Positions 9,786-63,595 of a stretch of 64,000 nt of DNA are shown here, piece by piece. Numbering within the stretch: position 1 is the first letter of the stretch; each line of letters opens with the position of its first letter. The notes beneath the pieces are model-generated. The model saw only the letters and a list, made by a program, of their open reading frames with translations. It ran no database searches and was not told where the DNA came from. The translations under genes and the position numbers were made by a program. Where the stretch lies: the sequence record PP886230.1; one strand, 5' to 3'.

Positions 9786-10169
9786 ATGGTTGATAAATGG
9801 AATAAGAAAGATCCATCACATGATGTTGATATTTCTGGTCTAGACAATGCACATAAGCACAAGTATCTAGATTCACTAGGTCTTCTAAAACCAGACCAAA
9901 GTCTTGCACATGATCGTCCATCCCGTGAAAAAGCATTTAGCCTAGAATCACTAGGTCATGAGCTTAATCGTGTGTTTGAGGATCACCCAATCTATGTACG
10001 TGATATTATCGAGAAACTTAAAGTAACTCCTAAAGAGCACTTTAAAGCAACTGTACACTCTGCATTCCGTGCATTACATGAATCTCTAAAGAAAACTCAC
10101 AATCTTCGTAAAATTCATGATGAAATCGTGAATGCAATCGAAAGTGAAAAACATAAGTTCAAGAAGTAA
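9786..10169 (+). CDS. Late protein, candidate internal head protein (paralog of 10415-11692)
   Basis: Late promoter; shares Y[LV]xSLGLL and a helical block with the next large ORF; FSLES motif. Confidence 0.55.
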   Translation: MVDKWNKKDPSHDVDISGLDNAHKHKYLDSLGLLKPDQSLAHDRPSREKAFSLESLGHELNRVFEDHPIYVRDIIEKLKVTPKEHFKATVHSAFRALHESLKKTHNLRKIHDEIVNAIESEKHKFKK

Positions 10170-10238
10170 TAAAAAGGGGTTGACTAAGGTCAGCCCTTTG
10201 TTGTATCATAAATTCTCAATATAACTGAGGTATCATAT

Positions 10239-10352
10239 ATGCAAGGTTTGAAATTTGTAGTTGCTGCACTCATCGCCGCAGTACTGGTTGGTGGTGTATT
10301 CTATGTAGTGGATCAAAAAGTAAATCCACCTGCACAAGAACAATCTAAGTAA
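10239..10352 (+). CDS. 37-aa single-pass membrane peptide (not in ORF track)
   Basis: GAGG RBS; MQGLKFVVAALIAAVLVGGVFYVVDQK... Confidence 0.6.
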   Translation: MQGLKFVVAALIAAVLVGGVFYVVDQKVNPPAQEQSK

Positions 10353-10414
10353 CAAAATAAGGTTGACTTCGGTCAGCCTTTTCTTTATACTATAAATATA
10401 GACATAGAGAAAAA

Positions 10415-11692
10415 ATGAAATCTATGGAGAGAAATCAAATGCCAAGTAATTTTACTGATAAAAATGGTGGTAACATGGCTGGTCACTCTGATAAATGGAG
10501 TGAACGCAACCGCCGTCCAAATAGTTATCAAGCAGGTCAAGGTTCACGTGGATCACGTAACCAAGGAACTGGTCTAGCTGGTAAAGCAAACGCAGAAGCA
10601 GGTGAAGTTAAGAGTACTGAGAACATGACTGAGCTAGAAAAGCTACGTTATGTTAATTCATTGGGACTTCTTAATGCTACACAAAAACAACGCCTAGCTG
10701 ATATGGAACGTGAAGAAAAAGAAAAATCTGCTCCTGCTAAAGAAGAACCAAAACAAGAAGCACCAAAGGCGGTTAACCCTGTCAAAGAACTGTCGGATAA
10801 GTTAGGTAAGATTTTTGCTAATAAACCACAACTTATCCAAGGTATTGTGAAAGAATTGCAATCTGTACCTAAAGAAGAATTAAAAGTCAAAGCACAAGCT
10901 GTGCTTGATGCAATGAGTGGAAATACCAGTACTGAACCAACTGAAGTATTCAGTACTATAATGCGTGCACTTGAAGGTACGCAACAAGGTGATGTGCCTG
11001 CACAAGAGGAAGTAAGTCTTGAAAGCGTACTTAAAACATTTGATAGTATTGGTAAAGAAGACCGTGCTAATGCTCAACAAGTTAAGAATGTACTAGCTAA
11101 GTTAGAAAACCGTCTGGAAGGTAAAGACGATAAGATTAAATTAGTATCTGATGCAGTTAACGATGCACTTAAATCTTATGTACAAGGTGAAAAGAGTCGT
11201 TTTGTAACTGCAATGGATGCTGCATTCAATACTATGAAAAAGTATGAAGCTGATCATGGTGAGAAGGTTACACGAGATGGTTATCTGATGCGTGATGATG
11301 AAGAAGGTGCAGTAGAACAGAACGATGTTCATTCAGACGAAGAAATTGATGACATGGAAGCTGAACTGTCACAAGACCGCCAAATGACTGAAAAATCCCA
11401 TAACGAACTACAGAAATTAATGCAATGGGTTGCAGATGTTGGTGAAAAAGCTGGTGCTGATAAGAAGAGTATAAACCGAAATCTTAGTTGGATTAAAGAT
11501 AAAGTTGGTAACAACGCTCGTAAACTACAAAAAGCGTGGACTGATGTAGTGAATGGTGCTGTTGACATTGATGTTGAATCCGGTGAGGCATATGATTATG
11601 CATTGACTACACTTGATGACTCTTTCCGTGATTACGAAAATGGAAATGTAACTCCTTGGGAAAAGGACATCATGAGCAAATACGGTAAATGA
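10415..11692 (+). CDS. Late charged helical protein, candidate internal head/ejection protein (start may be 10475)
   Basis: Late promoter at 10391; VSLES motif; low-complexity N-terminus. Confidence 0.55.
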   Translation: MKSMERNQMPSNFTDKNGGNMAGHSDKWSERNRRPNSYQAGQGSRGSRNQGTGLAGKANAEAGEVKSTENMTELEKLRYVNSLGLLNATQKQRLADMEREEKEKSAPAKEEPKQEAPKAVNPVKELSDKLGKIFANKPQLIQGIVKELQSVPKEELKVKAQAVLDAMSGNTSTEPTEVFSTIMRALEGTQQGDVPAQEEVSLESVLKTFDSIGKEDRANAQQVKNVLAKLENRLEGKDDKIKLVSDAVNDALKSYVQGEKSRFVTAMDAAFNTMKKYEADHGEKVTRDGYLMRDDEEGAVEQNDVHSDEEIDDMEAELSQDRQMTEKSHNELQKLMQWVADVGEKAGADKKSINRNLSWIKDKVGNNARKLQKAWTDVVNGAVDIDVESGEAYDYALTTLDDSFRDYENGNVTPWEKDIMSKYGK

Positions 11693-16313: not shown

Positions 16314-16685
16314 ATGAATATAGATTTGAAAGGTGCAACACGAACTGTTATCCTTATTGGGGATTATGCTATCAAGATTCCAACCTTCAAAAGCTGGAAG
16401 TTATTCTTGACAGGAATGATAGCTAACCTCAATGAACGTTCGTGGATGCAGTACTCCAATCGTAGTGATAGTAGTATCTGTCCTACGTTGTGGTCATCAT
16501 GTACTGGACTAGTAACTGTACAGAAACGTTGTAAGCCAGTGCAACATAGGGGTTTATTTTGGGTGGAGTTGTGTGCTTTAGCATTGAATTCAGAGTTAAG
16601 TACTGACTTCTTCTATTCAGATGCGAAGCCAGAAAACTTTGGGTATCTGTGTGGTAAGTTGGTTAAACTTGATTATGGAGATTAA
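16314..16685 (+). CDS. Minimal kinase-like protein
   Basis: KGATRTV, YAIKIP, DAKPEN and DYG motifs in only 123 aa. Confidence 0.7.
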   Translation: MNIDLKGATRTVILIGDYAIKIPTFKSWKLFLTGMIANLNERSWMQYSNRSDSSICPTLWSSCTGLVTVQKRCKPVQHRGLFWVELCALALNSELSTDFFYSDAKPENFGYLCGKLVKLDYGD

Positions 16686-16686
16686 T

Positions 16687-16956
16687 ATGTACGCACTGTA
16701 TAATAAAGAAAAGAAACGATTTGCTAAGGTTGAAATTTCGATTGATACATTTGACATGTTGGAGTACTGTATTGTAACGGACCTATATGCTAACTTGTAT
16801 TACGTTCTTGATGACGTATCAGTACTGCAACGATTGCTTGAGAATTCCAAAAGCCAATGCCAGGGCATCTATGATGGTTCATCTTATGAAACACCTGAGT
16901 GTTCCTACGGCTATCTGGACGGGTATGAGATTGTGAAGTTGGGGATTGTTGAATAA
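16687..16956 (+). CDS. Hypothetical protein
   Basis: GGAG RBS; coupled to the kinase-like gene. Confidence 0.65.
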   Translation: MYALYNKEKKRFAKVEISIDTFDMLEYCIVTDLYANLYYVLDDVSVLQRLLENSKSQCQGIYDGSSYETPECSYGYLDGYEIVKLGIVE

Positions 16957-45503: not shown

Positions 45504-47054
45504 AAACTATTTTAAAAGTATTTGTAGAAAGTACTTGCACCGTACTGATAAAAGCGTATAATGTTTTACATCGAGAGCGGGAACACTTCCCGCTACACTT
45601 TAAGAGAGATTAATACGATGGCAACTCAAATCACCAAAATTATTGCTAACCTGGTTAACTTCCGCGACGAGATGAAAGATCTTCCGGCGGCGACGGTTAA
45701 AACTCACATTGACGCATACCGCGAACTGATTAAAATGCTGCCGCTTAAGCGTGAACAATACGCCGCTACCGTGATGCTTGATGCGATGATCCATAAGATG
45801 ATCGCCAGTGATTTGACGATGGTTTATCAGTATATGGGCGAAAATTTCGCGGTGTGTAGTAAGCCAGTACCAGGGATGGCAACAACTGAGGAATTGCACG
45901 GCTTAAACTTAAAACAAGATGCATGGGATAATATGCCTCGTTTCCTGGTATGGGCTGACAGTGGCAAAATTTACAAATAAGTTTAATAAAGTACTTGCAA
46001 ACTATGTTTAATGGCGTATAATGTTTTACATCAGGTGGGGAATAGTTCCCCACTATATAAGAGGATTAAAAAAAAATGGCTAAATCAAAAATGTTCTTAG
46101 GTCACAAAAACAAAACTCATTGGAATGTAAGCCTGTGGATTAATAACGATGAGGGATTGTATCGGTTGGCCCTGGACTTTATTGCCGCCAATACTAATCG
46201 CAATGATGCGGCCCGTCATATGATGTTATTTTTAGAACAGACTGGACAAGATAAAACACCGGACGGATTCAAATATAGCACTACTGCGATCCGTGCGGCG
46301 ATGGTTGGAATGTAATAGAATAGAATTTATTTAAAGTACTATTGCACGGGGATAGTACTTTATAATAGTGTTTTATTCATACACCAACGATAAGGGCAAC
46401 AGCATGAATATTAAGTATTTTGCGACGCGTGAACAAGCTCGGATCGCCGCTCGCCAGGACGGGGCAACGTTTAAAGATATGGGCGTACAATCGGAACGTG
46501 GTAAACGTTGGGCCATTGTAAAGCGTAGTACCGCCAGATCATTACAGTACTGGTTAGCGGCCTTAAAAAGTCCCGATAGTGTATCGCGTCGAGTGGTAGA
46601 AATAAAGCTCGACCGAAAGGGCAACCGCGTGACCGTGTACCGTACTAAAAAGATTGCAGTACTTGAATAAAAAGTACTTGCAAACTATGTTTAAAGGCGT
46701 ATAATGTTTTACATCGAGAGCGGGAACTCTTCCCGCCTATAACCTGGAGTAATAAAAATGACTAATATGTATATGACTGAAGTTAAAACCGTAAAAGATA
46801 CTACCACGAATAAAACTACTTACTTACAGCGGATCTGTGGTGTATGGCAACGTATCAGCAAATCAAAGTACTTTAAATTAACATCATATGCAAACCGTTC
46901 TGATTCATTCAGTACTGAAATAAAAGGTAATAAAGTACACCAATACGGCACTTATTATTATTACAGCCTGGACGCGATTGCAGTATAAGCAGTTTACAAA
47001 TCTTTACAATTGCCGGTATTGACTTATTTTGTCAGTACTGGCATAATGTATTCA

Positions 47055-47160
47055 TTGGCAGATAAGCCGTAGCCCATAGGGTGCGGGAGTGTATCTATAG
47101 AAAAATTAGTTTAGTATAGTTACAATTGTGCACCCGGTGGGTTAGCTGTTGTCATGGGGT
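47055..47160. ncRNA. sRNA family B copies 4 (+) and 5 (-), convergent
   Basis: Cores at 47071-47084 and 47130-47143; promoters at 47019-47047 (+) and 47163-47191 (-). Confidence 0.6.
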
Positions 47161-47272
47161 ATATTATGCCAGTACTTGATAATGCTGTCAATACTTTTTT
47201 TTACTATCCAGTACAGAAAACTATTTTTAAAAAGTACTTGCAAACTATGTTTAAAGGCGTATAATGTTTTAC

Positions 47273-47348
47273 ATCAGGACGGGGGAACGAAATAAGTAAC
47301 TTCCCGTTAAGTAGCCCAGGAGTAAGGCACACGAAAAACTCCCCTGAT
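47273..47348 (+). ncRNA. Structured RNA family A copy 1
   Basis: ATCAGG/CCTGAT closing stem, two inner stems, no ORF, followed directly by the next promoter. Confidence 0.6.
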
Positions 47349-47416
47349 AAAATAGTTTGACAAATGTTTTTAAAAGCGTATAATACTTACATCAACTACT
47401 GAATGAGGGTTACAAA

Positions 47417-48028
47417 ATGAAAACTATCACTACTACTACTTTCGTTATGGATTTTTCTGAATTGAACGCAGAACAAAAAACGTCAGCTATCGAACTGGTT
47501 CGGGAACGTGAAAAAAACTCAAACGACAATTATTTTTCTGAAAGTGAAATTGAATACTATAAAGAAACAGTACTACCGGAATATGGCATTAATGACGCTG
47601 AAATACAATTCAGTGGCTTTTGGTCCCAGGGTGACGGTGCATCAATCAGTACTGACCACGTTGACGCAGTGAAGTTTTTACGCAAGGTAAGAGCATTAAC
47701 TAAGTATCGCTCAATCCGTCACTTGCTGAATGAAGATGATTTGGCGATGAGTGTAAAGCGTTCGCACTCCCACTACTCGCATGAGAATACTGTAAGCGGG
47801 TACATTGAATCGGCTTACACTGATTTAACCGCAAAACAAGAAACGTTAGTTAATGAGCTTGAGGAACTACTCACTGATACTATTCGTGAATTGTCCCGCA
47901 AGTTGTACCGTGATTTAGAGAATGCATATGAGGATCAATTCACTACTGAAAACATTACGGCACTGATTGAGGGTAACGAGTATCAATTCAATGTTATTGA
48001 TGGCGTAGTGGAATCAATCGAATATTAA
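47417..48028 (+). CDS. Conserved phage/plasmid protein with FSGFWSQGDGA motif
   Basis: Family recalled as often auto-labelled antitoxin of a TA stability system; the label is unverified. Confidence 0.55.
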   Translation: MKTITTTTFVMDFSELNAEQKTSAIELVREREKNSNDNYFSESEIEYYKETVLPEYGINDAEIQFSGFWSQGDGASISTDHVDAVKFLRKVRALTKYRSIRHLLNEDDLAMSVKRSHSHYSHENTVSGYIESAYTDLTAKQETLVNELEELLTDTIRELSRKLYRDLENAYEDQFTTENITALIEGNEYQFNVIDGVVESIEY

Positions 48029-48647
48029 TTTAAAAAGTACTTGCAAACTAAGTTTAAAAGCGTATAATACTTTATATCGAGAGCGGGAATAGTTCCCGCT
48101 ACTAATGAGGAATACTACAAATGAATACTTTTACCTTCGCTCAATTGAACGCCCTGGATGTATTGTCTGATGCTTTGCGGGATGCAACTGAAAGCGGTTT
48201 ATTTGACAATGTTGACATTCACCCTGATGTAATTAATAATTTTTGTGATGCTATCGCAGAAGTACTGGAAGATCTAAAAAAATAATAGAAAGTACTTGCA
48301 ATTAGTTTTTAGTACTGTATAATGTTTTACATAGAGGGGAGAAATGGTTCTCCCTGGTAATGAGGAAAATACAATGGCTAATATCACTACTCTTTCCCAA
48401 CTGGAAGCACTGGTTAAATCTATGCGGGAACATGCCGACAATATCGGCGTAAAAGATCCAGCCGTTTGCTTCTGCGACGAATTGAATGATGATACCCTGG
48501 TAATAGCAGAAGTCCAGGACGTTTCTAACTATTCCTCGCGTTACACTGGCGGCGTAGCAAATAAAGGTGACTTCTGTTTATACCTTACCAAATAACAACG
48601 CGGGGAGATAATAACTCCCCGTTACTTTTTCAGTACTGAATCATTTA

Positions 48648-48700
48648 ATAGACGGATCTCGGCACCCGGTGGGTTAGTGACTGTTTCGTCTTGATGTAGT
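48648..48700 (-). ncRNA. sRNA family B copy 6
   Basis: TTGACA-17-CATAAT on the minus strand; AGACG...AACCC-ACC-GGGTGC...CGTCT. Confidence 0.6.
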
Positions 48701-49718
48701 AATTATGCCAGTACTGGATGCACTTGTCAACAACTATTTTTCAAATACTTTTTATTAAAATACTTGCTAATAGTTTTTAAACGCGTATAATGTTTTGCAT
48801 AGGGGGAGCGGTTCCCCTGGTAACTAAGGAATAATAAAATGCTTGAACAAATCAAATCAACGTCTGCGAATGTAACGGGAACGGTTGTACACTTTACTAG
48901 TGATGAATCGCGGGGCGTTCCCTATTGTGCTGTACATGTAAACACTGATGGCAACTACTGGTTTACGGTTTACGGATCATATTCATTTGGACGACCAGGG
49001 CATCAAAAAATTCTGGATAAAGTACAGCCAACGGGTAAAAATATCACGGCTGAAATGTTTTATAAAAAATCATAAAGTACTTGATAATAGTTTTTAGTAC
49101 TGTATAATATTTTACATCGCAAGGGGGTAATGGTTCCCCCTGGTAACTAAGGATAATCAAATGAAAGTTGCATTCATCGCCCTGGCTTTATCTGTTTCCT
49201 CTTTTGCTGTTAATGCGTCGTTAGATGTAAGTAGTGAAAAATTCATTCAGTGCACTGTAGCAATGACAGATGAAAGTACTGGCGAGATTGTATTAAAGGA
49301 TCTGGAGATTCAGCCGGAAGCATTTAAAAACGGCCCGTTCCATGAAGAAGACGAAAACGGTAGCACAACAATTTATTATGATGCCAGTACTAAACGCGGG
49401 TCGGTCACTGTTATGGATACTGAGAAAGTAACTCATACTGGCGTTATTAATTGCCGTTGATAGATACTACGGGGTAACATCATGACTAAGCGAATTGTTT
49501 TACTTAACGAAAGCAGTACTACACAACTACTTAACGCCGTGCATTATGATATTGAAACGAGCGTTAATCTTATCAGTACTGTAGTACTGTTGGACACTGG
49601 AAAGGTCGCCAATGATAAAGCGATTGCAGGTATACTAACGGATCTTGAGCCTGGTAGCAGTGCACCAATAACGTTAAATGGTAAAGTGTTTAATATTTTA
49701 CTCACTGATTAAGTACAT

Positions 49719-49742
49719 AGCCCACCTGGTGGGCTTTTTTGT
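49719..49742 (+). terminator. Terminator TAGCCCAC-loop-GTGGGCT-T tract (also ~50447 and ~54609)
   Basis: Hairpin plus U tract after a stop codon. Confidence 0.8.
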
Positions 49743-49829
49743 TTTTGTAGTATCGTAGTACTGAGATACTTTGAAAATAGTTTTAAAAAAGTAGTTGACA
49801 TTACCGCAGAAAAGCGTAGAATGTATTAC

Positions 49830-49902
49830 ATCAAGACGGGGAGCACTAAGTAGACCGCCAGTAAGTCGAACGAAAAACTGGACACGTCGAGAAAACTTTG
49901 AT
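49830..49902 (+). ncRNA. Structured RNA family A copy 3, leader of the H-NS-like gene
   Basis: Shares TAAGTAG and stem-AAG-N4-ACGAAAA-stem with covarying stem. Confidence 0.5.
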
Positions 49903-49943
49903 ACACTAATAAACGTAAACTAAACTTTAATTGAGGATTTATA

Positions 49944-50426
49944 ATGGCTAATGTAAAATCATTCATCAAAGCACTGGTAGCAAATGAAACTAACGTCGCG
50001 GCTGAGATCCTGGCTGAACTGGATAACGATACCATGAAAGCGGTACGCAATAATTTTAACATCGCGTACAGTACTGCGAAAGAACTACAAGCAAATAAAG
50101 CGGCAGAAATTGAAGCGGCAAAGGCGGCCCGTGAAGCAGAACTACAAGCAACAATCGAAAGTATCCAGGCGGCGGTGTCTGGATTGGATCTGGAAGTGGT
50201 TGTGGAAATGGCACATAAAGCCCTGGCGGTTAAGTATGGTGAAGATAAGCCAGAATCTAAACCCAAAAAATGGATTCAGGAACGCGTAGCGGTAGTACTG
50301 GACAACGGGGAAGAATATCTGATTCCGGTGCGTGGTAACTGTATTGCGGTAGTACTGGACGCTATCAAAGAAAGCGGTATGACTCGCGAGGAATGGATCG
50401 AAGCTCATCGCAAAGTTGAAGCATAA
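49944..50426 (+). CDS. H-NS/StpA-like nucleoid protein with degenerate DNA-binding motif
   Basis: Coiled-coil N-terminus and basic linker. C-term VVLDNGEEYLIPVRGNCIAVVLDAIKESGMTREEW aligns by eye with H-NS [35 protein letters not shown]. Confidence 0.7.
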   Translation: MANVKSFIKALVANETNVAAEILAELDNDTMKAVRNNFNIAYSTAKELQANKAAEIEAAKAAREAELQATIESIQAAVSGLDLEVVVEMAHKALAVKYGEDKPESKPKKWIQERVAVVLDNGEEYLIPVRGNCIAVVLDAIKESGMTREEWIEAHRKVEA

Positions 50427-50710
50427 CAATTAAAGTACTGAATCACTAGCCCACTGTATAAGTGGGCTTTTTTGTGTTTATCGTTTACCAGGCCACCAGC
50501 ACCGCCTAGAAACGATTCTAACGCATTAAACGGATTATCTGATGCATTGCCCTAGCTGGTGGCGTTAAGGCTGTAAGAACGCGATTGAGAGCGTTTAAAG
50601 TATTTTGCAAAAAGTAATAAAAAGTACTTGAACGATTAAGAGATTAGCGTATAATGTTTTACATCGAGAGGGGGAAACGGTTCTCCTTCCAAATCAAAGG
50701 AATCAAAACA

Positions 50711-53700
50711 ATGGCTATTATCATTACTCGCGTATCTGGTACTACTGGCAACGAACAAGTAGTTGCAGTCATTACGAACAAGGCAGGTGCGGAATTGCAA
50801 AATGCAATGAATACCTGGGCCGTTAATGAGTTCGGTCAGTGGGCAAGTGTAGCATACATTGAAACCTATCAAGTGCCGTCGATTAGTTTAACTGATTTGG
50901 GCGTTGAGCGTATCCTTTGCCTTGATGAATTAAATTAAAAAAGTACTTGCAAAGTAAATCGAATAAAGTATAATACATTACATCAAGGGGAGAAATGGTT
51001 CTCCCCACTACAAGGAAACTAAAATGGCTATCATTACTAAAATCAAAGTTAGTAAATCACTGGTTAAACTTGAAGAAGTGAAAGAAGGTTATAAAGTATC
51101 TTGGTGCGGTATGTATCGGACGTTCGCAGATATAGATGATGCGATCAATTATTACACTGACACGGTTAAAAACTTTGTTCGTGCTGATGTGGTTATGGCA
51201 GTGGCAACATATAAAGCATCAAAAGAAAGTAAGTAAAAATATTATCACAGTACTATTGACATAGTTTGATAGTACTGGCATAATAACTTTTATCAAGACA
51301 ACTAAGAGGAAATTAAAATGGCTAACATCAATACTATAGCAGCACAAAATATCAACCTGTCTTCTGTTGAAGTTGTACATATTGCCGCTCGGCGTTGGTT
51401 CCAGGCTTCATATGGTAACACTTATTTCTCTTTAAGTGTAGACGTAGAAATTGATGGTAATTTTATTGAAGTAGTAAACGTGCCGTTCCAATATGGATAC
51501 GGGGATCATTTTGACACTGTAGCAATGGAAGAATTTAGCAAGGTTATTAATATGGAAGGTAAAGAGTTTTTACGCGGTTCTTATCTTTCCCGTTTTTGCC
51601 GTGATAATAATATCACTGTTTATAGTTCTGTTAGTGATGTTAAACGCAAAAAAGATCTTTAATTAGCTTTACTTTATGCAGATACTTTGATATAGTGTCT
51701 GCATAGGGGAAAGAAATTAAATTAACTTAAGAGGATAGTATAATGAAAAATATCAGTACTTTAATCGATGCAGGTACTCATGTTCGTCGGTCTATGGTTG
51801 CAACCAGTACTACAAAACAAGTAGCGAGCGGTTATCTTGTATTTGTGCACGATGGTAAACTCCTGGAACGTTCAATCAATTTTGATGTTAAAAACAATTG
51901 CCGTTTTATTATCTTTAAGCGTGAGCAATATAAAATTGATTTACCAGCAAAGCCCATTAGTGGGGCGTACAACGTGCAATCATTGTTTGAACGTCAACCA
52001 TACACCTATTAATCAAAACATCGTTAGCGGTCGATTCAGGCCGCTTATATTGGGGATTATACCATGAACGTTAATCAAGTACTGAATGAGATCGAAAGCA
52101 TCATTAAACCGATGAAGCGTACTGATGCTATGTTAACACCGGAAGAATGCCGCCTTTATGAGCGTTACAGCGTCGAACAAGTCCAGGCAATGGCTATGGC
52201 TACCCCAGCCGTTAAACCGCCTGAGAATGCGTTACAGGACGTTACAGGGGATTATATCATCAATCCAGTACTAGGGAAGATGGCTGCAATCACCGAAGAT
52301 CAACAAGACTACTTAAGCCAGTACTTAAAAGGTTAATTAATATGCTTACTGTACAGGATAAGATCGACATCTTAAAGGTTAATATGTATGTGATTGATGC
52401 AGAACCTGGTAAAGTATTTGCATACGATGATAGTACTGTAAGCGATTTCTACTATAGCCAGGCCGTGGGGGATCTTTCTGTACAGTCGGTTATTGAAAAC
52501 GTAGTTAATGCAGCGTATGAGCATTTACTTTCAAATAGTACTTGCAATTAGTTTTTAAACGCGTATAATGTTTTACATCGAGAGCGGGAATAGTTCCCGC
52601 CTCACTTTTAAGGAATATGAAATGAAAGCATCAAAAAAGAGTACTAACAAGAAAGCACGTTCAACCTTAGATGGGGTATTCCCTTTACGTTTCGTTGATG
52701 AAGTGGTTTCCTACCCGCCTGGCCTTACTCCTGAGATGGTAGAAAGTTTGCGTAAATCTAAAAAATAGTACTTGCAATTAGTTTTTAGTACTGTATAATG
52801 TTTTACATGAAGGGGAGAAATGATTCTCCCCAATAACAGGAGAAACAAAATGAAACAATACAACGCTCGGTTTGATGTTACTATCGGTAACGGCAAAGGT
52901 CAATTCTCTTTCAGTACTCGCCGCAGTTATACAGAAAACTTCCTGCGTAATTGTGCATTGACCGCCGCTCAAATTAAACATTATTTTCAGGCTAAAAAAT
53001 GAGATCATTAGCTTATTACAGTTCGGCCCTGGTCGGTGCATTGATCGCGGCGTTGTTAGTAACCTATCTATTCTTTATGGTGATTTAAATGAATCCTAAC
53101 GGTATAATTTACAGTACTCCTAAAACGAAAGCAGACAAGGTAAACGCTAAAAAAGCGAAAGTAAAGGAGTACATCAAACAAGGAATGACACGAAAGGCGG
53201 CGATTCTAAAAGCTAAAAATAAATGAAAAAGTGGTTGACTTCGGTCAGCCATTTTGCTATTATATATTCATTGAGAGATAGCTCACTAGCCCACAGGGTG
53301 CAGGAGTGTATCTATTGTATAATGTTTGAGTACTGAAAACTATTTTAAAGTATTTGATAAAAAGTACTTGCAAACTATCTCAATAAGCGTATAATGTTTT
53401 ACATCGCAAGGGGAAACGGTTTCCCCTAGTAATAAGGAAACGAATCATGACTATCTCAATTGCTCAATCTAACTTTGAAAATGAAATCATCGCCCAGGCA
53501 CTGCGTTTAAATGATGGTCGGGCCGAAATCAATTACGGTTTCAATTCAGGCGGTTGTGAAAAATATCAGTACTTTGTAACGGCTGATGGCGGTGTACTGG
53601 GCATCAATACAGTTATTGTAAACATACAGAAAATTAATTTCAATGATCCAGACGATAGCCAGTTTTACATCACTGGCGTAGACGTGAACTATGAGGATGA

Positions 53701-54905
53701 CTCACTAACTGATGACCACACTGGCGAGAAGTTAGAAAGTGCATACGGTGAAGATGATTATCAGTCCGGTCCAGAAGATTTCGAATAATATTAAAAAATA
53801 GTTTGACAATAGATTATAGTACTGTATAATAGTTTACATCAAGGGGAGAAAAACTTCTCCCCACTAACAGAGAGAGAAAACAAAATGGCTAATATCCGGT
53901 CGAAATTAAAAAATGCAAAACAAGTTTTATTTTCAGATCATGAATACTTTAATAAAGATATTACAGGAGTTACAAGTATCAAGGAAGTAAAAGAAAAAAC
54001 CGGCGTTTTGTGTGATGTGCGATTAGTTGGGACATTTGGGAATAACGTGCTATATCGCTGTGGTGATTACAATTTTACACTGACTATCATTAACTAAAAA
54101 TATTATCACAGTACTATTGACATAGTTTGATAGTACTGACATAATAACTTTTATCAACTACACTACTAAGGAATTAAAAATGGCTATCATCGCAAAAACT
54201 GAAATCATCGGCCTGGATTCTATCATCATGACGTTTGAAGATCAAAAAGGTATGTATGTGGTTTCCTATGGTGATTATGTTCGGGAGTATGAAACGGTAG
54301 ACGAAGCCTTTGAAAGTTACATTCGCCAGGTGAATAAAGCATACGACGACTACCGCTAAAATATATTACCAGTACTATTAAAGATATTGACAACGTTTGA
54401 TAGTACTGTATAATAAGTTTTATAAACAGTAGTTAACTTAACCTAAGAGAGAAATAAAATGATCGCACTGGATTCATTCATCGACGCAGTACTGGCAAAA
54501 ACTGGCGAGGATCTGACCGCAGAACAATACGCGATGATCGAACAATGTCAACAGGACGGTAAATCGGTGAAAGATACTGTTAAGATTATCCGCAAGATGT
54601 AAGATTATAGCCCACTGGTTAACGCTGGTGGGCTTTAATTCATTACCCTATACAATGCCAGTACTAAACCGTTTATCTCGTTAGAATGCGTTACAGGACG
54701 TTTACCAATGATTAGCATGAAATCAGTACAAAAACAAATAGAAACATTATCAAAAATTAAACGTAAACAGTACTCCTTAGAATATACAATCAATGGTAAC
54801 TATCATCTAATGAAAGAAAATAATTTTATAGTCATTGATGAATCATTGCAAATCATTAGTATAGTACTGAAAGCATTAATCAATGACAGAAAAAAATTAA
54901 AATAA
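50711..54905 (+). other. Early small ORFs 50711-50938, 51024-51236, 51318-51662, 51743-52012, 52064-52336, 52342-52551, 52622-52768, 52850-53002, 53447-53788, 53885-54097, 54180-54359, 54708-54905
   Basis: Promoter cassettes and RBS; no confident function. Confidence 0.7.
53270..53315 (+). ncRNA. sRNA family B copy 7
   Basis: AGATA-GCTC...AGCCC-ACA-GGGTGC...GAGT-G-TATCT after a terminator-promoter. Confidence 0.6.
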
Positions 54906-54944
54906 ACTATTGACAATATCATCCAGCACTGGCATAATACTTAC

Positions 54945-54992
54945 ACCAAGACGAGAACGTCACTAACCCATAGGGTGCACAAATGTAACTGT
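54945..54992 (+). ncRNA. sRNA family B copy 8
   Basis: TTGACA-17-CATAAT at 54910; core AACCC-ATA-GGGTGC. Confidence 0.55.
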
Positions 54993-55236
54993 ATAATATT
55001 GATCAAAAAATGATCTGATCAATACTTGATCAATTTGCGTAAAGTAGTATAATTCTATGCAGTTGGTTAGACGAAAGGTTATGATTAGTAGTGCAAGTGT
55101 ATAAAAATTTTCATGGTGTATCGTTCCGCACATATGGGGATGAATATGTGGTATCATGTGGATTGGAAAAAGTAAGAACAAGTAATATTATTGTCGCATT
55201 ACAGTACTATAGTATTTTTATAATGAGGTTAAAATA

Positions 55237-55494
55237 ATGGCTGTAGGATTCGCGAAAGATGGGGCCGAGCAAGACGAGATTAACGCAGTGATTCAGGCCG
55301 CCGTTAACCACGCTAGAAAGCAAATTAACGCACAAATAGAATCACTGATACATTGCCTCGACTGCGGCGATATAATCCCTGAGAAACGACGCCAGGCCGT
55401 TAAGGGATGTAAGTACTGCATAACTTGCCAGGAGGATCATGATAGTACTTTTAAACGTCCCCCGCGTAATTGTTGGCATAGATCTATGAGATAA
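55237..55494 (+). CDS. TraR/DksA-family C4 zinc-finger protein (YbiI-like)
   Basis: G[FW]AxD N-terminus; CxxCGxxIPExRRxAVxGCxxCxxCQ. Confidence 0.9.
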   Translation: MAVGFAKDGAEQDEINAVIQAAVNHARKQINAQIESLIHCLDCGDIIPEKRRQAVKGCKYCITCQEDHDSTFKRPPRNCWHRSMR

Positions 55495-55557
55495 AAAGTA
55501 TTGACAGTACTGAAAGATAGTGTATAATGTTTTATATCTTAACTGAGGATAGTAATC

Positions 55558-55914
55558 ATGGGAATACAACATATCACGCGTACTACTGACAATGGCGAGA
55601 TCACTGGCTATCAAGTACAGGGCAAAGTAGCACAATTGCAGTACTGGTTTGTGAAACGTGGAATCATTGCACCGGATCTTGATTATGACCGTGTAGCGTT
55701 TATTGATTCTCTTTATGTTGATCCTGATAGTCGGGGCAATGGTGAAGGTAACGAATTAATGAATGCCTTTATTGATGCCGCCGATGATTCAGATTGTATC
55801 ATTTTAGAATGCGATACGGGAGAAGATAACGCCTTTAATCTTAAAGAATGGTACGAAGGTTTCGGATTCGAGGTACTGATCGATAGTGAATATCCTATCA
55901 TGATTTTATCATAG
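55558..55914 (+). CDS. GNAT-family acetyltransferase
   Basis: IDSLYVDPDSRGNGEGNELM (motif A) and WYEGFGF (motif B). Confidence 0.85.
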   Translation: MGIQHITRTTDNGEITGYQVQGKVAQLQYWFVKRGIIAPDLDYDRVAFIDSLYVDPDSRGNGEGNELMNAFIDAADDSDCIILECDTGEDNAFNLKEWYEGFGFEVLIDSEYPIMILS

Positions 55915-57307
55915 TACTTGCATTTAGTTTTCAGTACTGTTATAGTACTTGCATCAAGGGGAAACATCTTCCCCTACTAAGAGGAAATAAAAATGGAAAA
56001 CTTATCAAGTATTTTAGTACAAGATGATTTCGGTAATCCTGGAAGTGCTATCATTGTTCGGGGTAATAAAGCAACGTTTGTTATTGCTGGTGGACCAGTA
56101 CAGCGTAGCATTAAAAATAATGCTGTTACCATTAATAATGTACGCTATCGCTTAGATAAAGAATTGATTCATAAACTGTAATATTAATTTAATAGAGGAT
56201 AACAATAAATGTACATTCATACTACTATCACAAAGGAAGTCCGTTGCCAGTTCGAAAGTATTCCGGGCGTATGTTTCATCACTGGTACGTTTTCCCCTGG
56301 TGATCGTGATAATCCAGTACTGTTACAATTACGCCATCCATCATGGGATAAAGCATTTGATCTACCGTTGAATGAATTCGCAACTACTGCTGAAAAGTAC
56401 ATTAAAAATATTCGCGAGAATGATCGACTATTCATTAATGCTTTTAGTGATTCCGCGTTAAGCGAGATCCACGGCGTATTGGTTGCAATCATGGAATCAA
56501 TGCAGAAAACTAAATTCAAACAAGGTGAATAAAAACTATTGACAATGCAACCCAGTACTGTATAATAGTTTACATGAAGGGGAGAAATGATTCTCCCCAC
56601 TGAGAGGAAAGAAAAATGCAAGGTCAACTAATCGTTCGTAAATGGTCTGATACTAACGAAAAACCGTGGGATGTACAATACATCGGACCGGATGGGGTAT
56701 CACGTTATCAGCCTGGCGTAACGCATAGTACTGAGCAATATGCCGCCGCTCACCGCGAACGCCTGTTAGAATCCATGAAACAGGGATTCTGTGAAAAATT
56801 CATTCAAGATCATTGGCTGAAAGATTAATAGAAGGAGTACAGCTTATGCAAATGAATCCGATGATTATTGTTTTAGCTGTACTTATGATCATTCATGCAA
56901 TTGTAGAAGTATTAACGCAATCAGGAGTAATAAAATGATTCAAGTAGAATTATCAGTACTGAAAGATCTGTTTTATCGGTTAGGTACTACTGGAGAGTAT
57001 CCTAAAAGTGATACCGCAAAACTTTTTGTATCACTCGACTTATGGCAACGCGAACAATTAGTAATGTCCTGGCGTAAAGGTAAAGCAGATCGCGAGGTGA
57101 AAGCATGAAAGAATTCTTATTCGAAGTAGTGTTTCAAGGTGTCGGTAGTAACCAACTGATTCGCTCAAGTGGTTACAATGTTAACCAGGCATGGAATAAC
57201 ATTAAACAAATGTACCCGAACGCTATCACCTATCGCAACCCGAAAGAAGTTTAAAAATATTTGAAAAAGGGATTGACTCCGGTCAGTCCCTTTGCTATTA
57301 TATACGC

Positions 57308-57350
57308 ATAGAAACAATTCAGCCCACCGGGTGCATAAATGTATCTATTA
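57308..57350 (+). ncRNA. sRNA family B copy 9
   Basis: ATAGA...AGCCC-ACC-GGGTGC...TCTAT. Confidence 0.6.
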
Positions 57351-57426
57351 TATGCTGGTGGCTAGTACTGAAAACTATTTTTAAAAAGTACTTGCATTGT
57401 ATTTAGAATCAAGTATAATGTTTTAC

Positions 57427-57499
57427 ATCAGGACGGGGAACGAAACAAGTAACCCCGTTAAGTAGTCCAGGAGTAAGACATACGAAAACCTCCCCTGAT
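57427..57499 (+). ncRNA. Structured RNA family A copy 2
   Basis: Near-copy of 47273-47348; substitutions keep the stems paired. Confidence 0.6.
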
Positions 57500-59659
57500 A
57501 AAATAGTTTGACAATAGAAATTAAACGAGTATAATACTTACATCAACCACTGATAAGGAAACATAAAATGCGGATTCTACTGACAGCTAACGAAATCGAA
57601 CAAGTACTGACTACTAACCTGGAAGACTGGAAACGTGAAGCAGATATCCAGGCGGTTCAATGGTTAAATGATAAGTTAACGCCGGATGACTTAAGCAAGA
57701 TTGTAGATCCTCAATTCTACGAAGATATCCACGACACCGCGTTAAGCGTCGAGGATGTACTAGATAAGCACTTTATTGATACTGATTTGCAGGTTTACGG
57801 TCGTAAAAACTTTATCACTATTCACGACATTTACAATAATTAAGTATTGACAAAGTATCTTAGTACTGTATAATAGTTTACATCAAGCGAGGGGAATGGT
57901 TCCCCTCCTAACTAAAAGAGAGAAATAAAAATGGCTAAGTGCACTATCTGCAAGAAAGAAATAGTATTAGTTCCAAGTGCCCGTGAACGTGCCGCTCGGT
58001 TCGGTGGCAAAGCGTCAGACTATACAAAAATGTTTACTACCCATACAGCTTGCCAGGTAGCAAAACGTTCACAAGAAAGCGTAGAATTAATGCGTAAACT
58101 TTCCAAAAAATAAGTATTGACAAAGTATCTTAGTACTGTATAATAGTTTACATCAAGTGAGGGGAAACGGTTCCCCTCCTAACAAAGAGAGAGAAATAAA
58201 AATGGCTATGATCCTTGCCCAGAAAGTAGAATTGAAAATTGTAACCTCCTTTGACATTAACGTTAATCGGTGGACTGATTCACACGGCAATACTTACCAC
58301 TCTTGCTACGTGTCTGCGTTAATTGGCGACCGCTGGGAAGACCTGGGACACGAAACCTTTACATACGGTTACGGTACACAAGGCGAATACACGGGCTTGG
58401 AGATCATTAAAGAAACCGTTATAGGTTTCAACCCGAAAGAAAAAGTTATTCACCGCATCGAGGAAGAGATCAACAAAGAAATAACAGTTCGCTACCACGA
58501 TGTAAAACGTAAGAAAGACATGTAATAGAATCCATTTAAAGTACTATTTGACATTGCCCAGATAGTACTTTATAATAGACTCTAACTTGTAGTACTAACT
58601 TAACTAATAGGATGTATACCATGATTACTAAATTCTACGCTACCCGTGAAGCTGCCCGTATTGTTGCACGCGAGGAAGGCGAAACATTTAAAGACATGGG
58701 CAAAGATGCACCGAAAGGTCAACGCTGGGCCGTACAGTTCAAAGAGATCTCTGATATTGTGAATTCACCGGAGCCAGTACTAACAGCAGCAGAACTAAAA
58801 CGAGCGGATTTACTGGCGTCAATACTTGATGCACAAGATGAGTTTATCGCTGATTCTGATATCAAAGTACAGACAAACCACACCGCTTGGACTCACGCGG
58901 ATCACCTGGCAAACCTTAAGCGTCCAAGTGAACTGATTCGCAACCAGAAAGAGATCCGACACGACCGTAAGGGTAATCGTGTAACAGTATACAGTAAACG
59001 CCGCCAGGTTATCTAATAACTTGCAGTACTAACAACACGGCGGGATCAGTTCCCGCCTTTTTTATAGGACAAACAAAATGATTAAGGTTCAACTATATAA
59101 AGATAACATCTTACGGGTACACTATAAAGCACCTCAGAGAATCATCACAAAGGCCGTACAGCTTGCTAATGAGTTTATTAATGGTAACCTATTACCAAGG
59201 AAGTTAAGCAACGGGAAACTGCGTGTAATCGATGTGGACACTAACAACAGAATAGTAATAGAGAACACAGGAAAAATAAACCTATATGAACACCAACAAT
59301 ATAATAAGAAAATAAAACTAATATCACGTTGACAGTACTCAAATGTTTTAGTACTATATGTACATACCAACACGGGGGAAACAAAATGATTACTTTAGAA
59401 AAACGTATCAAAGAAACTACATCGCTGGTGGAACTGTTAACAGTACTCAAATGTAAAACAACACCATTCAGCACGCCGGACTTTATTAATATGGTTGATG
59501 TTAATGGTCGCTATCGTATCACGGTCGAACAAGGAGCGGCGAAAGTATTCAGTACTAAAAACACGAAGGAAGTGATCCACGCCGTTAATGTTAAAAAAGT
59601 AGTTGCCATTGATAGTAAAGTACTGTAAGATAGTTACATTAACTCAAGGAGAACATGCA

Positions 59660-60244
59660 ATGCGTAATTATACTAAATTCATCCGTACACTGTCAGAAAT
59701 GGAAACCAACAAAGAGATCCTTTCAGCTTGTCGGTTAGCTGGCCTGGAGATCATCGGTGCTGGTTCTTCCCGTATAGTATTCGCTTTAAATGATCGGTTA
59801 GTGATTAAGGTCGCGAATTGTGATGCGGGTGTAGAACAAAATGAAACTGAATGTAAGGTATGGAATTTTTTAGACTATGACCGCCCTCAGTTGAAACAGT
59901 ACTTTGCAAAGGTGCATATGCATTTATGCGATCCTGATAATATGTTTATCGTTATGGATCGGTTGAGTACTGCAAGCAAAGGCAGCGTAAAGCACGTTAA
60001 CGCGTGCAACGAATTAAAGTATAATATTAAACGTAATGCCATTGAACGCCAGCACCGCTTTGCTGATGCACTACAACACGTTGATGATACATTATCAACA
60101 CTAACGATAAGAGATATCAGAAAACAGAATATCGGCCAGGATCGTAATGGACTTATTAAAGTACTTGATTACGGTTTAACCCGCAATATCTGGAATCAGT
60201 ACTATAAAAAGCGTGATGTAGAAGCAAGTAAGGTAACACGATAA
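59660..60244 (+). CDS. Ser/Thr protein kinase-like protein
   Basis: IGAGSSRIV, VIKVA, DIRKQN, LDYG; GGAG RBS. Confidence 0.8.
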   Translation: MRNYTKFIRTLSEMETNKEILSACRLAGLEIIGAGSSRIVFALNDRLVIKVANCDAGVEQNETECKVWNFLDYDRPQLKQYFAKVHMHLCDPDNMFIVMDRLSTASKGSVKHVNACNELKYNIKRNAIERQHRFADALQHVDDTLSTLTIRDIRKQNIGQDRNGLIKVLDYGLTRNIWNQYYKKRDVEASKVTR

Positions 60245-60297
60245 AAAAAGATTAAAAAAGGGATTGACTCCGGTCAGTCCCTTTGCTATTATATATT

Positions 60298-60345
60298 CAT
60301 TGAGAGATAACTCACTGACCCATAGGGTGCGGAAGTGTATCTATT
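60298..60345 (+). ncRNA. sRNA family B copy 10
   Basis: AGATA...GACCC-ATA-GGGTGC...TATCT. Confidence 0.6.
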
Positions 60346-62557
60346 ATATAAGTATTCAGTACTGAAAACTATTTTTAAAAAGTACTTGCATTGTACTTAG
60401 AATCAAGTATAATGTTTTATATCGAGAGGGGAAATGGTTCTCCCTCAAAGAACAAGGAATAAAATCATGACTACAATGACTTGCATTCACGCTTCAAACC
60501 TGCTTAATGATGCGGCCTTTAATGTTGAAACAGAATATCAATGTTATCGGGATGAAAATAAAAAAGTTTTTGTAGTTGATAATAATGGTTTCCATATTGA
60601 ATTGCAATCCGGCTTCACTGGCGTTGATGGTAAATCAGTATGGGGCGTACAGGATGATAAAGGCACATATCATTTTAAACGTAATTAAGTATTGACAAAG
60701 TATATCAGTACTGTATAATAGTTTACATCAAGGGGAGAATAGTTCTCCCCACACCAATAAAAGGAAACATAATTATGTCTAGCTACTCCGCTACTATGAT
60801 CATTAAAGATATGAACGGTAATCCTACTTCTGCTGGTGGATCATTTGGAAACATTAATTTAGATGGTCGGTTATCCATGCAATCAGCAATCGATGCAGCG
60901 AAAGAAGTTTTTAAGAATGAATGTACTGTTAGTAAGCTGGATTATATGGGATTTGCTATCGAAAAAACTAATCGTTTTGTGGACTACAAAAAACCACTGA
61001 TGATTGATACTAACCTGAAAGCAAACGAAGTGGAGTACTTATTATGACAGTTGAAGAAGTAAAAAAAGTACTGGCAGTACTACGCTATCATAATCATTGT
61101 AAGGTGAAGAATGATCCTGATTATCTTGATTCATCCCTGGAAGAGGATACACTACAAGCAATAAGCCATATGCAAAAAATGCTTAAGCGTATGACCGAAA
61201 AGAACAGGCCAGACTATATCGGAAATAAAATTTAAAAAGTACTTGCATTGTAGTTAGATTAACGTATAATGTTTTACATAGAGCGGGGGAATAGTTCTCC
61301 CGCCAGTCCAGGAGATACACCATGAACACTATCGAAATCACTATCAATGCACACGTATACGACAACGTAGTACTGCAAACTACTATGACCGCTAATGATA
61401 CCAGTACTTTGCGGAATACTGTTATTAGTGCCGTATGTGCCGCTATCGGTGATGTCGCCCTGGAAAATGCAAAACACGTAAACGATGGTTTCACTATGTG
61501 CAAACGTGATAACGCAAAACATATCATCGTGGAAGGTTACGGCGGTGTAGAATTTAATGTTTATATGAAAAAAGTACTTGCATAATAACTAAAACAAAGT
61601 ATAATGTTTTGCATAGGGGGAGATATCCTCCCCCACTAAAAGGAGTACTAAAATGGCTAACTTTGATGAACTGATGCGGGAAGTAGCTAACCTGGCAGAA
61701 GAGAAGAAATCATTCGATTCTATCTATAACACCGCTCATCGTGATTCAGTACTGGCATGTAACCAGGATCAAAAAGATGAACTAATCGCCACCTATCATG
61801 AAGCATGGAAGTACTACCGACAATGGGAGAAAGAAGAAAGCGAGTCTACCATCAACGGCATCAATAATCTAATCTAAAAGTTTTATTTCAGTACTATTGA
61901 CATAGCTTGATAGTACTGATGTAATAACTTTACTAACTACAAGGGGAAACATAATGGAACAGTTCACACAATATCGGGTAAATCCTCAAGCTATGGCCTA
62001 CGTAGAAGACCATAAAACGTTACCAGTACTGCAACCAGTTAAAGGCCATATCTATCGTGCAATGTCGTGGTGTGCGGCCCAGGATGGCTATAAAACCGTA
62101 GCCGTGGGTATGTACTGCGGTAATGGTGAATGGTTTGATCCAAATAATCCGGTAGCCATTGACAGTACTGAAAAAATGAAATGGGCCGACTACATCGAAG
62201 ATATTTCATAAAAACTATTTGACAGTACTAACCAGTAATGTATAATGTTTTACATAGAGCGGGGGAATAGTTCTCCCGCCAATAGTTTGGAGTTAAACAT
62301 TATGTCTATCGCTATCTCCCTGGTTGAAGTACTGAAAGAAGCTAAAGCCAACCAGATCGACGTAAAGATCCAGGAACTACAAAACGGCTTAATCGGCTGT
62401 ACTTGTACCGCTGGTGGAGCGGCAGACTATCGAGAACACGAATCACTCGAATCACTGGTTCGGTATCTTTCCATGATCGTTGATGATTGGAGAATCATCT
62501 AACAAAAAAGAATAAAAAAGGGATTGACTCCGGTCAGTCCCTTTGCTATTATATACG

Positions 62558-62598
62558 CATAGACAAAAACTAGCCCACAGGGTGCATAGGTGTATCCA
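62558..62598 (+). ncRNA. sRNA family B copy 11
   Basis: Core AGCCC-ACA-GGGTGC after the terminator-promoter at 62520. Confidence 0.55.
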
Positions 62599-63595
62599 AA
62601 ATATATAGTTAATAACGGTGAGTAACTATCTGCTGGTGGAACTAAAACTATTAATAAAAAAGTATTGACAAAGTATATCAGTACTGCGATAATGTATCTC
62701 GTAGGGCGGCAATGGTGCGACGGCCCACAAAGTTAGGAGATTCAAAATGACTACTTCAATCGCTATCGTTAAAGCTTTCATCCGTACTAATGTTTCCTCT
62801 GTATTCATCGACGGCCTCGACCGTAACGTAGAATACTCAATCATTATCGCACAAACGGCAAACGGTTCTCGGTACATCCTGAATGATAGTGAAGCAAATC
62901 ACTACTACTTCACTAAAGCCACTGGCTTTAAACGCATCGATGCTGATGTAGTATACGCTAAGATGAATAAGCTGGTAGATAAGATTAACGCTAAAGGTAC
63001 TATAGATTTACAGTACTGGACCGAAACCGATCCAGAGTATGGATCTCACCGCTACCTGAATCCAGGTATCAAAATGTAAAAAGTACTTGCATAGTACTTA
63101 GATTCATGTATAATGTTTTACATAGAGAGGGGGAAATGGTTCTCCCTCCTAAATTAAGGAGTTTTATCATGACCTTCTCAATCAATTCCTTCGCTGACGT
63201 TTTAGTACTGGCCCGGACTTTTGGTAAAGATGCACTGGAGTACGCTGTAAGTAATGGCACTATCCAACCGGAACAGTGCCGCATCATTGGAAACTGCAAA
63301 CGTTGGGCGGTATCCAATACTATTGCACTGGAAAACTTCCACGATGGCAACAATGAATATTCTGTTGATGTAGTATTCGAAGCCGTTGATCTCGGCGGTA
63401 TCTATAATACTAACCTGAATGATGTGCGTATCGTTCGCACGGGGTTCGGTGCTTATGATGTATCTATCCGTGAAGCTATGAACACCGGATACATTAGCAA
63501 GGACTTACTTGCTCACATCATGCAGCTGTGTACGGAACGTAACGAAGCACGTACTATCTTAGGGCTGTAAGCAATACACATCACCAAACATCATA

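Follow-up and report, generated by a model that had tools for sequence, protein, structure and literature searches.

The 64,000-nucleotide stretch of sequence record PP886230.1 analysed here (the window) carries, on its plus strand at 49944..50426, a gene for a 160-residue protein, P0001, which belongs to the H-NS/MvaT superfamily as a full-length but strongly diverged member. The window is 100% identical to the 368-kb genome of Escherichia phage vB_EcoM_E9.1 (E9.1), a jumbo phage of the PBECO4/121Q type that belongs to the genus Asteriusvirus and has a guanine-cytosine (GC) content of 36%. The homology of P0001, whose coding sequence (CDS) begins with ATG in the list of open reading frames (ORFs) and their translations, is supported by profile comparison, by hidden Markov model (HMM) ranking and by the fold. 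As to function, we consider it rather probable that P0001 is a diverged H-NS/MvaT-type protein which is made at once after entry and controls what coats the AT-rich phage DNA. All features described below lie on the plus strand.

A HMMER profile search of 1.84 billion representatives returns 46 proteins, of which 40 were aligned as a family, while three of the matches (the giant repeat proteins P0087, P0095 and P0097) are spurious and due to low complexity. Comparison of the 40-member family by hhalign with 63 enterobacterial H-NS/StpA sequences gives a probability of 92.5% (E 4.8e-7) over H-NS residues 51-135, diverse H-NS of Pseudomonadota (proteobacteria) give 68.5% (E 4.6e-5), and a control with reversed template gives 0.3%. 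The register of the profile alignments is constant, with G-L-D-L-E placed opposite the G-I-D-P-N-E of dimerisation site 2 in H-NS and LIPVRGN opposite TWTGQGR, and P0001 shares 20-27% identity with H-NS, counted over the aligned stretches only. When 1,777 six-frame ORFs are scored with an HMM built from the C-terminal domain only, H-NS proteins rank straight after the family members; their scores are low (about 10 bits), and, being near-identical in sequence, they count as one match. Furthermore, the Klebsiella orthologue (P0023; 36% identical) passes the Pfam model Histone_HNS_N (PF22470) with 25.5 bits at a cut-off of 24.5, and among the 40 family members this model recognises only the Klebsiella type, one member at E 2e-4. 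For the orthologue in Klebsiella phage Muenster, GenBank lists an HHpred match of 97.2% to NP_417155.1, which we checked and which is StpA. In the ESM Atlas an H-NS_N cluster at 0.75 offers a lead only, and the C-terminal part of P0001 has no match there. The model of the H-NS C-terminal domain (PF00816, Histone_HNS) matches none of the 40 members, and PF22055 (MvaT_DBD) has no match in family members at E up to 0.01 and none in the 151 genomes searched. A word search with P0001 returns close relatives only.

The predicted structure leads in the same direction. AlphaFold2, supplied with the family alignment, models the whole of P0001 with a mean predicted local distance difference test (pLDDT) score of 92.1. 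The helical N-terminal and central part (residues 4-98, 49953..50237; pLDDT 92-97) consists of four predicted helices, at residues 4-12, 16-23, 28-77 and 83-98, which mirror the four helices of H-NS, and its site-2 region lies within the hhalign match, which in the helical part covers H-NS residues 51-83. The conserved G-L-D-L-E turn corresponds to residues 80-84, where G80 is found in at least 90% of the 40 family members and D82 is invariant only in a 16-member family alignment. A flexible, lysine-rich linker follows (residues 99-113, 50238..50282), which has no predicted secondary structure and a block-mean pLDDT of about 70 and aligns with the linker of H-NS, and the protein ends in a predicted DNA-binding-type domain (residues 114-155, 50283..50408) with strands at 114-118 and 124-128 and helices at 135-144 and 148-155. 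Helices, linker, strands and helices follow one another in the same order in the structures of H-NS. The H-NS-like layout and C-terminal pattern that an earlier, sequence-only reading of this DNA had described are thus borne out, both by the profile comparison and by the order of elements in the model.

Structural searches with the whole model, by Foldseek and VIA-align, are dominated by the long helix, and even so the C-terminal domain of Salmonella H-NS (2l93) is Foldseek rank 2. The C-terminal domain modelled alone has a pLDDT of 82.8, and VIA-align finds only 4 of 48,161 PDB representatives at Z of at least 2. The best of these is 2mxf, the C-terminal domain of MvaT on DNA, with Z 3.4 and a root-mean-square deviation of 2.9 Å over 44 of 47 residues, and the third of the four is 2lev, Ler on DNA (Z 2.1); Foldseek with the domain alone ranks 2l93 second and 2lev seventh. 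Three H-NS-family domains within such a handful of matches are hard to get by chance, and the models indicate that the strand-strand-helix-helix fold of the H-NS C-terminal domain is present in P0001.

The loop that would contact DNA is altered and conserved at the same time. In the hhalign register, the codons CGT GGT AAC at 50331..50339 lie opposite Q112-G113-R114 of H-NS and encode R130-G131-N132, the end of LIPVRGN (residues 126-132). Among the 40 family members G131 is present in all and N132 in 38, while residue 130 is R in 10, T in 10, K in 9 and S in 6; arginine occupies the last hook position in only one of the 40, so that the family does not carry the Q/R-G-R motif. The claim that the TWTGQGR hook has been replaced by LIPVRGN therefore stands in part, as QGR is changed and LIPVRGN does lie opposite; it is not a simple replacement, since the glycine is invariant and the asparagine nearly so, which means that the hook has not been lost.

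MvaT bonds to minor-groove bases through the backbone of G99-N100 and the side chain of the asparagine, which provide half of a Q/R-G-R hook, and Arg80 supplies the other half, the two forming an 'AT-pincer' (PMC4466236). G131-N132 is located three residues after strand 2, like G99-N100, and the ranges of the structural alignment (12-60 of the model against 79-123 of the 2mxf chain) put the two pairs in register; as deduced from these alignment offsets, G131-N132 would pair with G99-N100. R114, the first residue of strand 1, is conserved in 30 of the 40 members, with lysine in three more, and R80 of MvaT sits three residues before strand 1; the family column that would face R80 holds K or R in 13 of the 40. 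Hooks of the Lsr2 type read R-G-R and have an arginine at the position matching R130. The phage loop is thus a hybrid hook, with R at the Q/R position as in the R-G-R hooks and N at the last position as in MvaT.

Binding of DNA by P0001 is therefore likely, although it may be weak. A metagenome protein, P0092 (386 residues, L090:588-1748), joins the C-terminal half of the family to a DNA-methyltransferase-like N-terminal domain, which matches phrog_799 (E 1e-13) and also phrog_5172 and has no homologue in E9.1, in the 121Q-like genome G001, in Muenster or in Munch. As a natural fusion, P0092 supports the view that the C-terminal domain is a DNA-targeting module.

The location of the gene bears on when the protein is likely to be made. 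The E9.1 record contains two copies of it, one at a distance of about 6.1 kb from the left end and the other about 14 kb short of the right end, and the 49.9 kb of window upstream of the gene indicate that the copy in the window is the right-hand one. In the related phage fEgEco12, a direct terminal repeat of 20,993 bp has been proved by restriction digests (PMC13070987). The orthologous protein of fEgEco12 is 95.6% identical to P0001, and the repeat of this relative taken together with the positions in E9.1 places the gene inside the terminal repeat. It thus lies about 6 kb inside a direct terminal repeat of roughly 21 kb and is present in two copies per genome. A similar position is seen in other RaK2-like phages, as in the records that begin at a physical end the family gene is 1-6 kb from the left end, and in fHe-Yen9-03 and XbC2 it is the first annotated gene of the record.

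The gene is also set apart as its own transcription unit by the intrinsic terminator of the upstream gene at 49719..49743, which has a 7-pair stem with five G-C pairs followed by a T run and is conserved in six Asteriusvirus phages. A predicted sigma-70-type promoter follows at 49795..49822 (TTGACA, 16 nt, TAGAAT), which matches the consensus at 11 of 12 positions and has hexamers that are invariant in the same six phages. The 5' leader of about 115 nt (49829..49943), nearly invariant in the six-phage alignment, ends with a GAGG ribosome-binding site (49933-49936) situated 7 nt before the ATG, and the gene has its own intrinsic terminator at 50448..50476, an 8-pair stem followed by a T run. 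The minimum-free-energy fold of the leader is no better than that of shuffled sequences (z +1.1), no Rfam family reaches threshold in it, and the sub-threshold matches at 50448..50476 are terminator-like only. Promoter and leader together (49775-49943) are almost invariant in the six phages, while the coding synonymous rate (dS) is about 0.7. In a small soil metatranscriptome run (X4), contigs fall almost exclusively on the leader and the 5' half of the gene (49813-50063), and one of them starts at 49813, near the predicted transcription start; such contigs are no proof of a transcript.

The gene is under purifying selection, with a ratio of nonsynonymous to synonymous rates (dN/dS) of 0.14 over the whole CDS in five Asteriusvirus orthologues and of 0.10 in the C-terminal domain, which is the most constrained part. 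The final 85 nt or so of the CDS (50340-50426) are nearly invariant in the five phages even at synonymous sites, which suggests a constraint at the level of DNA or RNA, or recent recombination.

The sigma-70 promoter, the strong ribosome-binding site, the separate terminator and the position in the terminal repeat suggest that P0001 is expressed immediately, in which case host RNA polymerase would make it as soon as the DNA has entered. P0001 would then compete for the phage DNA alone, or would co-polymerise with the H-NS/StpA of the host via its site-2-like region, where its resemblance to enterobacterial H-NS is closest. By such means the phage would decide on the coat of its own AT-rich genome, and host H-NS would be kept from silencing the phage promoters. 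An early anti-silencing role is plausible, as it fits the terminal-repeat position, the promoter and the base composition, and we infer that an immediate-early part in a contest with host H-NS/StpA, in which P0001 would bind DNA, oligomerise and act against silencing, is the most economical reading of these features.

Several findings weigh against this proposal. No H-NS model of Pfam matches P0001 even at E up to 10, searches of PDB sequences with phmmer and a profile HMM give no H-NS match for it, and residues 1-78 alone show no significant similarity to H-NS residues 1-65 in hhalign. Neither Z (3.4) nor the Foldseek E (about 1) is a strong score by itself, which is what a domain of some 45 residues leads one to expect. 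Metatranscriptome contigs span the whole region, but RNA and DNA are indistinguishable in them and neither a start nor a strand can be read from them, so they lend no support to early expression. Furthermore, the C-terminal half is acidic, with a net charge of -3 for residues 98-160 as opposed to +5 for residues 80-137 of H-NS, and position 138, just after the hook, is K or R in 37 of the 40 family members but leucine in P0001 and the Asteriusvirus lineage. The sub-threshold Pfam matches of P0001 to DUF3846 and Tox-PL-2 are noise, and its matches among PDB sequences to ApeA (E 0.015) and to coiled coils look like chance.

The missing Pfam and PDB sequence matches, the modest Z and the ESM Atlas value of only 0.75 would be accounted for if P0001 were a helical phage protein unrelated to H-NS, whose small strand-helix domain is alike by chance. 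We regard this as extremely unlikely, since profile comparison, HMM ranking, the Pfam match of the orthologue, the third-party HHpred result, AlphaFold2 and the structural matches agree in register and architecture, which argues against chance resemblance, and since three of the very few best structural matches are C-terminal domains of the H-NS family.

The negative charge and Leu138 raise a different issue, as together they imply that the affinity for DNA may be weak. They would also suit a dominant-negative antagonist, that is, a P0001 which co-oligomerises with H-NS/StpA and poisons their filaments while its own C-terminal domain has little or no affinity for DNA, following the logic of H-NST and with Ler-like anti-silencing as the outcome. 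The absence of the canonical QGR is in line with such an activity, and so is the fact that the strongest similarity is to enterobacterial H-NS, including site 2, rather than to diverse H-NS. However, an invariant G131 and the lowest dN/dS of the protein are unexpected for a functionless domain, P0092 joins this same domain to a DNA-methyltransferase-like one, and residues 1-78 have no detectable similarity to site 1 of H-NS; we therefore view pure antagonism as an unlikely explanation.

Another conceivable role is repression. The gene is surrounded in the repeat by at least 19 near-identical predicted early promoters of one class (45530-63116; AAAA-AGTAC-TTGCAA, 16 nt, (G)TATAATGT), many of which carry a further AGTACT in the spacer, directly ahead of the -10 box. 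Its own promoter, AGTAG-TTGACA ... TAGAAT, is a variant outside this class, preceded by AGTAG and not by the AGTAC flank of the neighbouring early promoters, and this variant is invariant among relatives. These circumstances, together with a full-length architecture of the kind which H-NS uses for filaments, are what one might expect of a silencer or timer that coats DNA and represses either host genes (shut-off) or the AGTAC-flanked early promoters of the phage (an early-to-middle switch). We find this doubtful, because the acidic C-terminal half speaks against strong unspecific coating and no specific link connects P0001 with the AGTAC-flanked promoters.

The AGTACT word itself is a conspicuous property of these genomes. 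It occurs 291 times in the window, where 21.9 occurrences are expected, is the most over-represented hexamer and is often extended to CAGTACTG; its density approximately doubles from about 40 kb on, in the early region and the terminal repeat. AGTACT alone is strongly enriched (13.5-fold, the next reaching 2.9-fold) among the 64 W-S-W-W-S-W hexamers (W being A/T and S being G/C), and of its close variants TGTACA is at 2.2-fold, ACTAGT at 0.6, AGATCT at 0.7 and TCTAGA at 0.2. Enrichment of the word by a factor of 9 to 21 is seen in all contigs that bear a family member, from phages of E. coli, Klebsiella, Salmonella, Yersinia and Xanthomonas as well as in four metagenome contigs, with a value of 9.5-fold in the contig of P0092. 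In the terminal repeat of the Pseudomonas relative PA5oct (L134, bases 1-40000) it is depleted, with 4 occurrences against 13.5 expected (0.3-fold).

These numbers relate to the suggestion, made in the sequence-only reading, that P0001 reads AGTACT. In its developed form this would make P0001 the missing AGTACT reader or a part of it, a silencer fold re-specified from AT-richness to a host-rare word, whose R-G-N domain reads the approximately 1,000 AGTACT words and thereby marks the phage DNA as self. The enrichment in all family-bearing contigs is consistent with this, as is PA5oct, which lacks both the gene and the enrichment; in addition, the G-N loop of MvaT has room for a G-C pair (PMC4466236), and the fusion protein of one metagenome phage couples the domain with a DNA-methyltransferase-like one. 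Nevertheless, all carriers belong to one clade, so that the co-occurrence is worth roughly a single event and follows a pattern common to many clade-specific genes. Moreover, enrichment of a single hexamer demands discrimination between A and T and between G and C at every position, and lineages which share the identical word differ in the residue that precedes G-N (R, T, K or S). Position-by-position discrimination of bases is typical of major-groove dimers, and we know of no minor-groove hook of the H-NS/MvaT type that gives a base-by-base readout. The suggestion is thus not upheld, and we judge such a reader to be quite improbable; if it were true, the phage could cover its DNA with chromatin of its own as early as the first minute after infection and distinguish self from host.

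The AGTACT word also explains a feature of the gene that might be taken for a functional element. The peptide A-V-V-L-D occurs twice, at residues 116-120 in strand 1 and at residues 135-139 at the start of the post-hook helix, and, as had been noticed from the sequence, this results from repeated DNA, since both copies are encoded by the exact 15-nt direct repeat GCGGTAGTACTGGAC. The copies, at 50289..50303 (with AGTACT at 50294-50299) and 50346..50360 (with AGTACT at 50351-50356), are in frame and 57 nt apart. The core of the second copy, GTAGTACTGGA, is invariant in five Asteriusvirus genes, whereas the first copy differs in each of the other four genes, and AGTACT is missing from it in two of them. 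A functional role of the 15-nt repeat was therefore rejected, the first copy not being conserved. The repeat is a lineage-specific coincidence in which two V-V-L peptides are spelled GTA GTA CTG, a by-product of V-V-L codons that bear AGTACT in a genome where this word is 13 times more frequent than expected by chance. The CTG codon that gives L138 is in the second copy, inside the invariant AGTACT. A further exact direct repeat of 14 nt (50081-50094 and 50138-50151) encodes E-L-Q-A twice, with a spacing of 57 nt that equals that of the AVVLD repeat.

The family comprises two PHROG families, 27871 (which P0001 matches at E 6e-83) and 20181, both listed as of unknown function. Its members are found in Asteriusvirus, in Alcyoneusvirus (RaK2, K64-1 and Muenster), in Munch-type Salmonella phages and in fENko-Kae01, and also in CBB, GAP32, the Yersinia phages fHe-Yen9-03 and fHe-Yen9-04, Serratia phage BF, Erwinia phages and Xanthomonas phage XbC2, and the family is restricted to RaK2-like jumbo phages. 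With the family profile, one gene per genome is found in five control records, and the whole record of PA5oct contains no member at E up to 1, while the positive controls are recovered in five of five cases. The metagenomic jumbo-phage contig L008 carries two family paralogues about 6 kb apart (10001-10618 and approximately 16329-16847). The records of Muenster and K64-1 label the family gene as a (putative) DNA-binding protein, and a literature search returned no paper on P0001 itself.

Comparison with known systems shows in what sense P0001 is unusual. It shares with H-NS and StpA (PF22470 plus PF00816) two short helices, a long helix, a G-[LI]-D turn, a fourth helix, a basic linker and the strand-strand-helix-helix domain, and it retains the hook glycine and a similar C-terminal motif, G-x-[ST]-[RL]-x-[ED]-[FW]-[IL]. 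Unlike H-NS, however, it has an R-G-N and not a Q-G-R hook, lacks the T-W-T which precedes the hook, has an acidic C-terminal half and is encoded by a lytic jumbo phage, and its first 78 residues are not demonstrably homologous. MvaT (2mxf), as the best structural match of the C-terminal domain, has the G-N at the same distance from strand 2, but it has no equivalent of R130 at the Q/R position. In addition, the lysine network of MvaT is only partial in the phage family, the likely equivalent of K105 being leucine in the Asteriusvirus lineage, and the helical part of P0001 resembles enterobacterial H-NS instead.

Similar protein types are already known from mobile DNA. Ler and H-NST, H-NS variants acquired by horizontal transfer, have changed hooks or domains and counteract silencing, and Sfh of plasmid R27 and the H-NS of phage EPV1 are full-length H-NS homologues carried by incoming AT-rich DNA (PMC7074111). 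The C-terminal domain of Ler on DNA (2lev) is among the four structural matches of the P0001 domain, but Ler has a V-G-R hook and is encoded in a pathogenicity island (LEE), and H-NST has no DNA-binding domain, so that both differ from P0001. Sfh and EPV1 H-NS are comparable in that P0001 too is a full-length H-NS-family protein on incoming AT-rich DNA; they are recognisable and have standard hooks, whereas the phage family has diverged much further, occurs only in RaK2-like jumbo phages and belongs to the first genes of the terminal repeat. T7 gp5.5, T4 Arn, T4 MotB and LUZ24 Mip are early phage proteins that handle H-NS or MvaT on AT-rich phage DNA (PMC8501957, PMC7827196, PMC6070864). These are not H-NS homologues and have unrelated folds that bind H-NS/MvaT or DNA, whereas P0001 is a diverged copy of the silencer.

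To conclude, unrelated phage inhibitors of silencing and ordinary H-NS copies on a few mobile elements were known before, while here a whole clade of 350-kb lytic phages has kept, as one of the first genes of the terminal repeat, a homologue of the silencer that has diverged deeply. A firm annotation would close a gap that recurs in all RaK2-like genomes, and the search for the reader of AGTACT is narrowed by the reasons which make P0001 an unlikely candidate. The combination of an oligomerisation region like that of enterobacterial H-NS with an MvaT-like G-N loop is a natural experiment on how hook residues set DNA preference, and P0001 is a compact candidate for the way in which giant AT-rich genomes may escape from, or reuse, host chromatin.

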